Origin: Octopus bimaculoides | Taxonomy: Eukaryota | NCBI RefSeq assembly: GCF_001194135.2 | Contig: NC_068986.1 | Location: 107,200,448 to 107,239,638, forward strand | Reading direction: 5' to 3' | DNA length: 39,191 nucleotides | Shown here: piece after piece, positions 1,555-11,669 of the stretch | How positions within the stretch are numbered: the stretch's first letter is position 1 | How the letters are laid out: each line of letters opens with the position of its first letter | Notes under the pieces: generated by a model | What the model was told of the DNA's origin: nothing | Database searches by the model: none | What the model saw: the letters and a program-made list of their open reading frames with translations, nothing else | Made by a program: the position numbers and the translations under genes

Positions 1555-1622
1555 TTAACATTCATCCACGTTCTTATAAATGAATTTCCTCCGTTTTTTG
1601 AGAACTTCGCCCACATTGCAAA
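1555..1622 (-). CDS. Gene A terminal exon: (I)CNVGEVLKKRRKFIYKNVDEC*
   Basis: Strong acceptor tttcatttactgtttcattttgcag. Open in phase 1, matching the upstream exon. TAA at 1557-1555, then AATAAA. Brings the Cys count to 8. Confidence 0.75.
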
Positions 1623-2284
1623 CTGCAAAATGAAACAGTAAATGAAAATGCAATGTTATTTAACATATTAATTGATGGAAGCAATACGGATAATATTTTT
1701 TTCAATATAAACTAAATTTTGCAATAATTAAGAATAATTATCATATTTGATGACATATAATACGCCCTTTTTTCCGGAAAACGTCTCAAAAAATTACCCC
1801 ATGTCCTATATATGAAGTTGAACCTTCGATAAACTTTAATGCGCTAAAGGTTTTTTTTTTCTACCTGTTTTCCTGAACGTAAGCTGCTGCAATTGGGGTA
1901 GGTCCTTTACGCCTTTGAATAGAGCAAGTAGTCTTCAGTTGGTTGTATAGTTCATTAAGGCCTAATTCAATAAATCTAATTGTCAAAGTATATTAAGCGC
2001 AATGGAATTGTGGTCTGATGAATTGAACTTGATGGTTGGATTTGTACGTTATCTGGCGCAATGAACTGATTAATAAACGTTGATTACAAACATATTGTAA
2101 TGTACGGCTATTCATTTTTCTTTTCTTTGTTTCATCTATAAAATTCTTAAAATCGAAATCTTTGTTTCCATTTTGGTTGAATTACTTTGGTCCTTCATCA
2201 TTACAGATTTTGTGCGGAAGAAATTCAACATAATCGAAATAACGTCGTGTATCTAAAAAAAAACAGCCAGCAAGTTCGGAGGAG

Positions 2285-2452
2285 GAAGTAATTCGATTAG
2301 GTTGACCCGAGTGATAAGCTGGTACTTATTTTATCGACCCCGAAAGGATGAGAAGCAAAGTCGATCTCGGCGGAATTTTAACTCAGGGCCTAATGACGGA
2401 CGAAATGCCGCTTAGTATTCTGCCAGTCGTGCTAACGATTCTTCGCGGTCAC
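2285..2452 (-). mobile_element. tRNA-headed SINE family 1, diverged
   Basis: Homologous to copies at 6756, 13293 and 21165 (atcgaccccgaaaggatg...gacctcggcggaatttgaactc core). Confidence 0.85.
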
Positions 2453-2664
2453 CGACTTTGTATCTAGTATGATTAAGAACATCATAATTGAACTAGAAGC
2501 ATCTAAATCAAATGAGATCCATATATAAAAATTATAGGGTATATTTTAATTCCTTAAATTTATCTTCCGAACGAGAAAGAAATAGAACACATTCCGGCAA
2601 GATATTTCTTCCCGTCCCAAAGAAAGCAAACAACCAATCACAAACCAGCTTACAATGCTGCTCA

Positions 2665-2741
2665 CATTCTTTTCTACTCTAGGCACAAGTCACGGGGAAA
2701 GCCAGTCGATTATATCGACCCCAGTATGCAACTGGTACCTA
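2665..2741 (-). mobile_element. SINE family 1 3' fragment
   Basis: ttttctactctaggcacaag...gtcgattatatcgaccccagt matches the tails at 13293 and 20998. Confidence 0.7.
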
Positions 2742-3727
2742 GGTTTCTGGATGTTATCCGTCCTTAGTGTGAGACAATCGCCAGCTAGTGATGAAACCTA
2801 TCTCCACTCGCAAATACATACATACATACATACATACATACATACATACATACATACATACATGTATATATATATATATATATANNNNNNNNNNNNNNNN
2901 NNNNNNNNNNNNNNNNNNNNNNNNNNNNNNNNNNNNNNNNNNNNNNNNNNNNNNNNNNNNNNNNNNNNNNNNNNNNNNNNNNNNNNNNNNNNNNNNNNNN
3001 NNNNNNNNNNNNNNNNNNNNNNNNNNNNNNNNNNNNNNNNNNNNNNNNNNNNNNNNNNNNNNNNNNNNNNNNNNNNNNNNNNNNNNNNNNNNNNNNNNNN
3101 NNNNNNNNNNNNNNNNNNNNNNNNNNNNNNNNNNNNNNNNNNNNNNNNNNNNNNNNNNNNNNNNNNNNNNNNNNNNNNNNNNNNNNNNNNNNNNNNNNNN
3201 NNNNNNNNNNNNNNNNNNNNNNNNNNNNNNNNNNNNNNNNNNNNNNNNNNNNNNNNNNNNNNNNNNNNNNNNNNNNNNNNNNNNNNNNNNNNNNNNNNNN
3301 NNNNNNNNNNNNNNNNNNNNNNNNNNNNNNNNNNNNNNNNNNNNNNNNNNNNNNNNNNNNNNNNNNNNNNNNNNNNNNNNNNNNNNNNNNNNNNNNNNNN
3401 NNNNNNNNNNNNNNNNNNNNNNNNNNNNNNNNNNNNNNNNNNNNNNNNNNNNNNNNNNNNNNNNNNNNNNNNNNNNNNNNNNNNNNNNNNNNNNNNNNNN
3501 NNNNNNNNNNNNNNNNNNNNNNNNNATATATGAATACACATACATACTCATAAAAGAGGAAATTTTAGGTTATACATACCTACATCATATTGTATATTTA
3601 GCTTTATATCATCTTTATACACCTTGCAGTAAAATGCAACACAACGACGTTTATGCAAACCGAATCGAAAGTCACCAGCGCTCAGGCATTTTCCACTGTC
3701 ATCTATACAGTCTGAGAAATTGATTGG

Positions 3728-9844: not shown

Positions 9845-10794
9845 GGTACAGAACGTCATGAAACGTGTACAACAAAAAATACGAATTACGAGTGCATGGA
9901 ATATGAACCATTTTTGCGAACAACAAAAGACACAAATGGAAAACAAGACAAACAACATAAAGGACGATCCTTCATCAGTTGTTGCCTGTTTTTCTAGTCT
10001 CGTACATCGAGCATTTAACAAGAATATACGCTTTCGATAAAGCAGTTACTCCCTCAAAGCAAATTTTAAAAAAATGGGGATTTTGCGGAGGGTAAAAATT
10101 GGTAACACAAACAGAATTGTGTAAACAAACAGGAAGAGATGTTCTTCTAAGTAAGTTTTATCTTAATAATTCTGATGCGCACTCTATAGTATCTTTTTAC
10201 TGTTTGGTTTTTCTCTCTTTGTCTCTCTTATTCTTTTACCTCCTCTTCTCCCACTATTCATGACGTTCTCCCACTATTCTATCCTATTACTCTGTCACTC
10301 TCTCTCTCTCTCTCCCTCACTCCTCCACCCTTGCTCACGTGGCTCACACGTGACCATCAGCCGTCTTTCCTTCTTCTCCTAACTTGTGCTTCTTTCTCTC
10401 CCGTGTAGCTGGAACAAGGAAGACGTGTGTGTCCTTGTCTCTCTCCTGTCCAAGCTTGATTTATGCGTTCGTTACCACAACCTTGTTAAGGCTTAGCAGC
10501 CCTTCCTGTTTGTTTTCACTGTCCTGTTTGTGTTACCAATTTTGACTCTCCGCAAAATCTCAAATTTTATTTAATTTGCTTTGCGGGAGCTACTGTTTTA
10601 TCGAAAATGTATATTGTTGTTAGATGCTCGAAATACGAGACTAGAAAAACAGTCAAAAACTGATGAAGGGTCGTTCTTTATGCTGTTTGTCATGTTTTCC
10701 ATTTGTGTCGTTCGTTGTTCGAAAAAATAGTTCAGAGTCCATGTACTCGTACTTCGTATTTTTTTGTTGTACACGTTTTATGACGTCCTGTACC
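9845..10794. mobile_element. Fold-back element with about 290-bp imperfect inverted arms in TA-rich sequence
   Basis: 9845-10136 is the reverse complement of 10502-10794 with substitutions. Ends ggtacag.../...ctgtacc. No ORF. Confidence 0.85.
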
Positions 10795-11382
10795 TATATA
10801 TATATATATATATATATATATATATATATATATATNNNNNNNNNNNNNNNNNNNNNNNNNNNNNNNNNNNNNNNNNNNNNNNNNNNNNNNNNNNNNNNNN
10901 NNNNNNNNNNNNNNNNNNNNNNNNNNNNNNNNNNNNNNNNNNNNNNNNNNNNNNNNNNNNNNNNNNNNNNNNNNNNNNNNNNNNNNNNNNNNNNNNNNNN
11001 NNNNNNNNNNNNNNNNNNNNNNNNNNNNNNNNNNNNNNNNNNNNNNNNNNNNNNNNNNNNNNNNNNNNNNNNNNNNNNNNNNNNNNNNNNNNNNNNNNNN
11101 NNNNNNNNNNNNNNNNNNNNNNNNNNNNNNNNNNNNNNNNNNNNNNNNNNNNNNNNNNNNNNNNNNNNNNNNNNNNNNNNNNNNNNNNNNNNNNNNNNNN
11201 NNNNNNNNNNNNNNNNNNNNNNNNNNNNNNNNNNNNNNNNNNNNNNNNNNNNNNNNNNNNNNNNNNNNNNNNNNNNNNNNNNNNNATGGTACAATGAAAT
11301 GAAGTAATGAATGTCTTATTGAATATATGGAATATGTCTTATTGAATAGATGAAATATTGAGTGTTCAATATAAAGGATTAA

Positions 11383-11537
11383 ATATATAAAGGCGAATAC
11401 GTATTTTCAATACCTTGTGGTATTTCATCATGGCCGGTATCTGACAGACTGTAACAGACTGTCTGTTACAGTCTGTCAGATACCGGCCATGATGAAATAC
11501 CACAAGGTATTGAAAATACGTATTCGCCTTTATATAT
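11383..11537. repeat. Perfect 155-bp palindrome (77-bp arms, 1-nt centre at 11460)
   Basis: Arms are exact reverse complements. Confidence 0.95.
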
Positions 11538-11645
11538 GATAGGTAAAGTTGAGCGCTTAGCATTTTGTTTCATGCCCTAAAAGGTTTCCATCTCGCTGGG
11601 ATGTGCTATGGAAACAATCAATTATTTCTTAAGTATTTACCTTAC

Positions 11646-11669
11646 CTTAGTAAAGTTCTTCATCAACAT
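11646..11669 (-). CDS. Gene A first coding segment: MLMKNFTK
   Basis: ATG at 11669, AAG|gtaagg donor in phase 0. The exon shares the 13-mer agttattcacaat (11683-11695) with gene B exon 1 (22297-22309). Confidence 0.65.

Follow-up and report, generated by a model that had tools for sequence, protein, structure and literature searches.

The stretch of Octopus bimaculoides DNA analysed here, 39,191 nucleotides (nt) long and referred to throughout as the window, contains on its minus strand a real gene of five exons, LOC128248177, which we call gene A. It lies on chromosome CM046606.1 (GCA_001194135.2) at ~107.20 Mb of 117 Mb, in draft sequence that is broken by 16 N-gaps and contains many microsatellites, along with the debris of short interspersed elements (SINEs) and transposons. 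The gene A mRNA is 553 nt long and polyadenylated, every intron runs from GT to AG, and the open reading frame (ORF) specifies 141 amino acids (aa) with 12 cysteines (MKKT...VDEC; MKKTIALYLLLVISNIVADVNAVANDSPSNRGQKKCKGCQHNGKCICNNTFGFYITAGECMKMMCVLFQLLTLYKNCIDDSGKCLSAGDFRFGLHKRRCVAFYCKVYKDDIKLNIQYDVVCNVGEVLKKRRKFIYKNVDEC). A preliminary description of the window had pictured a hidden gene at this place; the exact 141-aa protein is, however, already present in RefSeq and UniRef (XP_052825018.1 / XP_052825019.1, 'uncharacterized protein LOC128248177', O. bimaculoides), so that gene A is an annotated, uncharacterised gene.

The gene structure was read from RNA contigs, placed on the window by tiling short stretches; the RNA runs are coded X1, X2 and so on, X1 being a 2022 run of O. 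bimaculoides, and contigs and depths given below are from X1 unless another run is named. Exon 1 (8567..8635, minus strand, as for all exons of gene A) consists of a 57-nt 5′ untranslated region (UTR) followed by ATG AAG AAA ACA (MKKT), with the ATG at 8578–8576 and a GTATGT donor. Its upstream edge (~8635) is the main transcription start of gene A: depth is 1.1–2.2 x 10^5 over 8567–~8635, 13.8 upstream and 135.6 in intron 1. A TATA-like TTATAATT (8653..8660, minus strand), read from the sequence ~20–25 nt upstream of the start of coverage, is a putative promoter element. The 5′UTR also holds an upstream ATG on the minus strand (8606–8620), which opens a 14-codon ORF, MSWNFIITISWVMQ, with a stop that overlaps the main ATG; a G-to-A change in O. 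vulgaris shortens this upstream ORF to two codons.

Exon 2 (7079..7169, 91 nt, depth ~10^5) encodes the hydrophobic core of a signal peptide and a variable N-terminal tail, IALYLLLVISNIVADVNA followed by VANDSPSNRGQK. Exon 3 (5282..5404, 123 nt, phase 1-1) encodes a six-cysteine module, CKGCQHNGKCICNNTFGFYITAGECMKMMCVLFQLLTLYK, at a depth of up to 4.06 x 10^5, with coverage limits exactly at 5282 and 5404; an internal donor near 5330 (G/GTGAGT, the slash marking the boundary here and below) was rejected, coverage being flat to 5282. Exon 4 (3580..3711, 132 nt, phase 1-1, depth 1.2–2.8 x 10^5) encodes a four-cysteine module, (N)CIDDSGKCLSAGDFRFGLHKRRCVAFYCKVYKDDIKLNIQYDV, and exon 5 (1485..1622, depth up to 2.9 x 10^5) encodes (V)CNVGEVLKKRRKFIYKNVDEC, a TAA stop at 1555–1557 and a 70-nt 3′UTR. 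The two AATAAA signals described earlier as following the stop are confirmed, at 1491–1496 and 1481–1486, and a contig with a loose end of 23 T before 1485 marks the poly(A) tail, 6–11 nt past the AATAAA at 1491–1496.

Each junction is seen in RNA. Four contigs pass 7169 into TGTTTTCTTCATTGCATTACCCA, which corresponds to 8567–8589 and joins exon 1 to exon 2; the joint between exons 2 and 3 was aligned from 5404 to 7079, the skipped part having ends CT..AC on the plus strand, the complement of a minus-strand GT..AG. The remaining two are given by reciprocal loose ends, from 5282 to 3685–3711 and from 3711 to 5282–5303 for exons 3 and 4, and from 3580 to 1607–1622 and from 1622/1624 to 3582–3600 for exons 4 and 5. 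Exons 3 and 4 are also spanned by one contig of run X2, which comes from another species. Intron stretches have depths of 40–136, a level expected of pre-mRNA, compared with 10^5–4 x 10^5 in the exons.

Some contigs depart from this structure. One is chimeric, joining the start of exon 3 (5388–5404) to the middle of exon 4 (3655) at a shared CATAA; the product is in frame (CKGCQ/HKRRC) and may be an artefact of template switching or else a rare isoform with a deletion. In another contig, at a depth of 175, exon 1 with three mismatches is joined to an exon-2-like TTAAATAACTATAATTAAATACAATTCTAT (plus strand) that is absent from the window, which points to another close paralogue or allele, situated either elsewhere or within a gap; the sequence, as read, has an in-frame stop. 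The foreign upstream sequences of two contigs were not found in the window.

The preliminary description had assembled a smaller product, of 101 aa with eight cysteines, from four segments (11646–11669, 7079–7169, 5282–5404 and 1555–1622). All are minus-strand segments whose splice sites are canonical and whose phases are compatible, and the second, third and fourth are exact to the base, the fourth being the coding part of exon 5. The pairing of 7079–7169 with 5282–5404 likewise holds. The first segment (MLMKNFTK), in contrast, does not supply the N-terminus, since none of the four contigs that leave exon 2 upstream joins it to 7169 and all enter exon 1; and 5282 pairs with exon 4, not with 1622. 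The earlier precursor thus had its first eight residues wrong and lacked 44 others. Exon 4, which had been overlooked, lies within readable sequence between the gaps at 2885–3525 and 4201–5007, and its length of 132 nt is a multiple of 3, so that the earlier frame survived its loss by luck.

The first segment does occur in RNA, within a rare alternative 5′ leader exon (11646..12342, minus strand, depth ~112) that ends at the very donor proposed earlier (AAG/GTAAGG). A contig of 817 nt (depth 111.8) covers 11646–12342, and its loose end before 11646 equals 8608–8633, showing that the leader is spliced to an acceptor (ttcag/TGCACGC) at 8633, at ~0.05% of the main depth. Within this isoform, the ATG at 11669 opens an 18-codon upstream ORF only, MLMKNFTKCTLFRCRGTS, ending in a stop. 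That RefSeq lists two accessions with the same protein is consistent with two UTR variants. The leader contig runs on past 12342 into SINE-like sequence matching 13308–13337, with a join that would read GT..AG on the plus strand; this may reflect misassembly mediated by a SINE, a polymorphic insertion or antisense transcription.

Use of the 11646 donor in vivo, together with the fact that skipping of exon 4 would keep the frame, gives the four-exon, 101-aa form some plausibility as a transcript. As the main product it is refuted: its leader leads to a stop at a minute fraction of the main depth, exon 4 is as deep as its neighbours, the listed loose ends at 5282 and 1622 all lead to exon 4 with none joining 5282 to 1622, and the exon-4 module is present in the RefSeq protein, in O. 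vulgaris and in all paralogues. We therefore attach almost no credence to it, and proceed with the five-exon, 141-aa, 12-cysteine structure.

The preliminary description had also allowed for extra exons in the gaps at 2885–3525 and 4201–5007. All six flagged gaps lie outside exons; four are intronic within the transcribed span (these two, 6607–6645 and 8247–8256), and those at 9343–9794 and 10836–11285 are upstream of the main start. Since the exons are joined directly in the mRNA, no coding exon of the dominant transcript lies in a gap. In a pre-mRNA contig, the gap at 6607–6645 (39 N) proves to be 68 nt long. Around 8247–8256, a contig has 50 nt against 90 in the window, where an identical 30-nt repeat flanks 10 N (8217–8286), and this gap is a false duplication produced by the assembly. 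The orthologous locus of O. vulgaris, which is gapless, agrees with these five exons in number, lengths and splice sites.

One junction bears directly on whether the transcript encodes the full protein. Splicing of 7079–7084 to 5403–5404 creates a run of eight A in the minus-strand mRNA, and some junction contigs carry nine (depth 6362) or ten (depth 924) A; in these variants the frame meets a stop after QKK, and the protein would be truncated if they were genuine and dominant, which counts against a 141-aa product. Of the depth in the four contigs that were aligned as joints, the larger share has one or two extra A, as expected if most mRNA had nine A and the transcript were effectively non-coding or yielded a peptide of only ~37 aa. 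The depth reaching the junction exceeds 10^5, however, so the variants amount to a few percent, as slippage on A8 predicts, and at least eight contigs show the exact eight-A join as loose ends, with an agreement of 0.94–1. In O. vulgaris, moreover, the join reads AAAAC/CATGT, without an A-run and in the same frame, and the 106 codons downstream are open, with all cysteines kept in both species and in the paralogues. The non-coding alternative thus seems very improbable to us, and the longer variants are probably polymerase slippage on the homopolymer.

Taking the 141-aa frame as the coding sequence, we find a single N-terminal peak in the hydropathy profile and no second long hydrophobic stretch. 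Residues 1–22 (MKK, a 15-residue hydrophobic core, and V-N-A at positions -3 to -1 before V23) are predicted to form a cleavable signal peptide, leaving a basic mature part with a computed 119 aa, 13.7 kDa and pI of 9.1. The protein has two N-glycosylation sequons; its body is made of two symmetric phase-1 exons, for the six- and the four-cysteine module, and ends in a two-cysteine tail whose last residue is itself cysteine. Because there is a leader and no membrane anchor, and the chain ends on cysteine, the product is expected to be a soluble secreted protein without a glycosylphosphatidylinositol (GPI) anchor, in which the 12 cysteines would form six disulfides in the endoplasmic reticulum. 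The gene model and the secretion of its product, taken jointly, appear to us close to certain. A profile alignment (hhalign) of exon 3 against exon 4 brings G-x-C...C-x4-C into register, in the same phase, with E=0.089, which is suggestive only; the two exons may be internal duplicates.

Known families were searched for relatives of this protein, which had been described beforehand as compact, signal-peptide-bearing, with an even number of cysteines and without a named family; that description is supported. Neither Pfam (E<=10) nor the sequences of the PDB contain a match to the gene A protein, and no published description of the gene or its family was found in the literature. A word-indexed homologue search with the 141-aa protein also returned no match, though the collection searched includes the identical RefSeq entry. 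The family emerged only from a profile built of four exon modules, all of them window-encoded and drawn equally from gene A and a paralogue (gene B, described below). Searched against 1.84 billion representatives, it gave seven matches, six of which are Octopus proteins of 69–142 aa.

Besides gene A, the O. bimaculoides members are LOC128248178 (gene B), LOC106872966, LOC106872050 and LOC106869804; O. sinensis contributes LOC118763715 and LOC118763690, and O. vulgaris CAI9723911.1 and CAI9723912.1, the last of which models the gene A orthologue in truncated form. Gene A is thus one of at least five paralogues on its chromosome, and the O. bimaculoides copies that were located lie at ~90.7, 106.8 and 107.2 Mb of one chromosome. 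Paralogues share 26–34% identity, yet the 12 cysteine columns are invariant in the seven full-length members (gene A included), which follow the register C-x2-C-x5-C-x-C-x12/13-C-x4-C-x12-C-x6-C-x14-C-x4-C-x16-C-x19/20-C, with cysteine as the last residue. Every member begins with a hydrophobic leader of 20–35 residues. Searches of the members' loci and the window with tblastn revealed a shared exon plan of a leader, a six-cysteine exon of ~123 nt, a four-cysteine exon of 129–132 nt and a two-cysteine terminal exon, with introns that are all in phase 1. The relatives (126–152 aa) therefore agree with gene A in signal peptide, cysteine spacing, C-terminal cysteine, exon layout and phases, whereas gene A differs from its paralogues in a 13-residue variable tail before the first cysteine and in a separate exon for MKKT. 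All are labelled 'uncharacterized' or 'hypothetical', and provide no functional information. Pfam gave no meaningful match for any of eight members, nor did PDB sequences, and the family is seen only in Octopus, with no counterpart in Pfam, the PDB or the literature.

One database label points elsewhere: UniRef names the paralogue A0A0L8H3R2 a 'UPAR/Ly6 domain-containing protein', which would make gene A a three-finger protein. Ly6 proteins start LxCxxC, and the C-x2-C-x5-C opening of the gene A domain resembles this start, a likeness that serves as a lead only; Ly6/uPAR proteins (CD59, SLURP-1, Lynx1, elapid neurotoxins) are also small, secreted and disulfide-rich. Against this, no UPAR_LY6 or toxin model of Pfam matches any of the eight members at E<=10, and hhalign of the family against a three-finger profile, validated by its recovery of 85 PDB three-finger chains at E<=1e-5, gave a probability of 0.1% and E=0.49. 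The CC...CN end motif (CC-x4-C-N) is absent, as is an adjacent cysteine pair in any member, and the family has 12 cysteines in ~106 residues as opposed to 8–10 in 70–90. On Pfam, profile comparison, C-terminal motif and cysteine count alike, we reject membership, and consider the label improbable as a description of gene A. An epidermal growth factor (EGF)-like or cysteine-stabilised hairpin-helix domain was also considered: exon 3 contains ...G-K-C-I-C-x3-F-G-F..., recalling the C-x-C-x2-G-F of EGF, and a low-confidence single-module model shows a beta-hairpin followed by a helix. This candidate was likewise rejected, there being no EGF or defensin Pfam model at E<=10, a different cysteine spacing and nothing from Foldseek.

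Comparison with O. vulgaris revealed an uneven pattern of conservation. The 3′UTR (1485–1554) is identical at 70 of 70 positions and the 5′UTR (8579–8635) at 56 of 57, far better conserved than the coding sequence (~89% identity) or the introns (79–95%), which hints at strong post-transcriptional or regulatory constraint. The signal peptide is identical at 20 of 22 residues (91%), the whole protein at 110 of 141, and every cysteine is kept. Coding changes comprise 40 nonsynonymous and five synonymous, giving dN 0.129, dS 0.061 and a ratio of 2.1. Fourteen of the nonsynonymous changes fall in the 13-residue tail before the first cysteine, which is almost wholly replaced. Residues other than cysteine thus evolve at a rate near or above neutral, whereas UTRs, signal peptide, cysteines, frame and splice sites are held. 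In the closely related species of run X2, a 313-nt contig lying on 5282–5403 and 3661–3711 is ~98% identical in exons 3 and 4, with a completely different sequence before the first cysteine (...GNTTRIPEA/CKGC, compared with ...AQGNLKP/CSGC in O. vulgaris). Read together, the sequences from these two species show the pre-cysteine tail to be hypervariable.

The same comparison bears on whether the protein could be a prohormone or neuropeptide precursor, cut by convertases at QKK, HKRR and KKRRK into small peptides. The signal peptide and these three di- to penta-basic sites would suit such a precursor, and O. vulgaris retains KRR and KRRK. QKK, on the other hand, is LKP in that species and absent in the paralogues, where the other two sites are not conserved either, and the basic sites lie between conserved cysteines, so that the fragments would stay linked by disulfides. 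Nothing was found in indexed nervous-tissue-era runs, and the mRNA level would better fit an exocrine product. A prohormone is accordingly an improbable alternative.

Expression of gene A is extreme and, in the indexed data, confined. In an index search, run X1 was the only RNA run of the species that holds gene A exons. Runs X12 and X14, from the same study and species, have zero depth on exons 1, 3 and 5, and runs X6–X8 (deep, 2026) have zero depth over the blocks of exons 2 and 3, apart from one bin at 0.26, and over 11646–11669. The best reading of these data, with the single run X1 as its basis, is expression restricted to one tissue and at a very high level.

The paralogue gene B (LOC128248178) occupies the plus strand of the window from 23526 onward (23526–39191), head-to-head with gene A and ~15 kb away. 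Its signal-peptide exon (23526..23604, MNIYPILLFPVAVMSPGIILHNTAAD) was found by tblastn, and its junction to 25312 is present in an X1 contig. The six-cysteine exon (25312..25434, 123 nt, CTGCYYDGHCFCSNQLGLHLTQRSCLMIECKKHQLLVHNV, depth 98.8) has the phases of gene A exon 3 and 38% identity to it (E=9e-10), and the four-cysteine exon (36205..36336, 132 nt, CKDHSGHCMRNDQVWPSVYYNICVTHYCETHRLQTTLATRFDL), which is included in RefSeq isoforms X1–X3, is 26% identical to gene A exon 4 (E=6e-7). The three RefSeq isoforms have 165, 133 and 119 aa, with alternative last exons near 36812 and 38598; the terminal exon of the 12-cysteine isoform X2 (ICTADHILMHIMKFYYPEMKHC) was not found in the window. Like gene A, gene B is seen in run X1 only, at ~1/3000 of the gene A depth. 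Its sole contig (depth 99) reads through the donor at 25434 for ~2 kb to ~27560, near an AATAAA at ~27522, and this transcript would give a truncated product ending ...HNVCK. A 3′UTR-like GGAACATTTGATAT motif lies near 38508.

Elsewhere, the introns and intergenic stretches are crowded with transposon remains. Scans for Rfam families and tRNA genes gave no hits in the window. At 11383–11537 there is a perfect inverted repeat of 77 nt with a 1-nt spacer (100% complementary), which may be a foldback element, resembling a miniature inverted-repeat transposable element (MITE), or an assembly artefact; its left flank belongs to a repeat family transcribed in all RNA runs examined. Telomere-type (TAACCC)n fills positions 1–60, though the locus is internal (107.2 of 117 Mb), and could be an interstitial telomeric repeat or the relic of an old scaffold end. 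Transposon remnants at 36790–37850, 16800–17800, 26100–27500 and 30000–32700 include mariner-like transposase and reverse-transcriptase-like fragments, and many SINE copies (for example, at 5560–5950, 6240–6590 and 6760–6990) are scattered through introns and intergenic DNA, accounting for nearly all RNA-read coverage in runs X6–X8.

Taken as a whole, the observations on gene A are best explained by a secretory protein of an Octopus-specific family. Its product would be secreted in bulk by one specialised tissue or gland, and the protein may act outside the cell, binding a target through fast-changing surface residues that a fixed scaffold of disulfides displays. Conserved UTRs and signal peptide, fixed cysteines and a variable surface are a familiar signature of exocrine effectors such as venom, antimicrobial and reproductive proteins. 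A parallel is offered by the precursor genes of cone-snail toxins, in which signal and UTRs are conserved and the mature region is hypervariable on a fixed cysteine framework. Gene A shares the conserved UTRs and signal, the fast mature region and the kept cysteines, and its expression is extreme and restricted; it differs in having no sequence relationship to those toxins, another cysteine framework, a much larger mature protein (106–119 aa) and no conserved propeptide cleavage site, so that the resemblance is one of evolution, not of membership.

Several observations weigh against this explanation, in addition to the A-run variants. The dN/dS ratio of 2.1 does not exceed 1 significantly (binomial p=0.085), and relaxed constraint on residues other than cysteine is as good an explanation as diversifying selection. 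Expression of the gene was seen in a single RNA run, whose metadata give the tissue in coded form, and the evidence for the product is at the mRNA level. AlphaFold models of single modules have low confidence (pLDDT of 68, for a beta-hairpin plus helix, and 58), and Foldseek searches with these models against the PDB gave no match. Allowing for these points, we assign the explanation as a whole a probability of roughly 0.85.

Its functional part is less firm. That the product is a tissue-specific secreted 'effector' has, judged from sequence and expression pattern, about an even chance of being right. Among specific roles, the toxin, antimicrobial or signalling idea put forward in the preliminary description fits the expression and the evolutionary pattern, and a defensive or offensive toxin-like or antimicrobial effector would account for about half of our expectation; a reproductive, egg or pheromone-type protein is a weaker candidate, and a structural, mucus or other role weaker still. 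More tentatively, and on balance doubtfully, the family might constitute an undescribed class of secreted effectors with six disulfides, confined to Octopus and with a fold that neither the PDB nor Pfam yet contains, built by duplication of phase-1 'G-x-C ... C-x4-C' exon modules and shaped by diversifying selection; gene A would then encode the dominant secretory product of a gland that earlier octopus tissue surveys did not sample, and serve as a new toxin, antimicrobial or pheromone scaffold.

This work is no gene discovery, the exact protein having been in RefSeq already. It provides an independent confirmation of the annotated model, junction by junction, across a gap-ridden draft region in which two gap artefacts have been resolved, and it places gene A in an uncharacterised, Octopus-only family of 12-cysteine proteins. 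Secreted proteins confined to one lineage are a known category, and gene A is a good candidate for a new cephalopod secretory effector, which may serve in venom, defence or reproduction, both for its extreme mRNA level in one indexed run and for the conserved UTRs, signal peptide and cysteine scaffold that surround a fast-changing surface.

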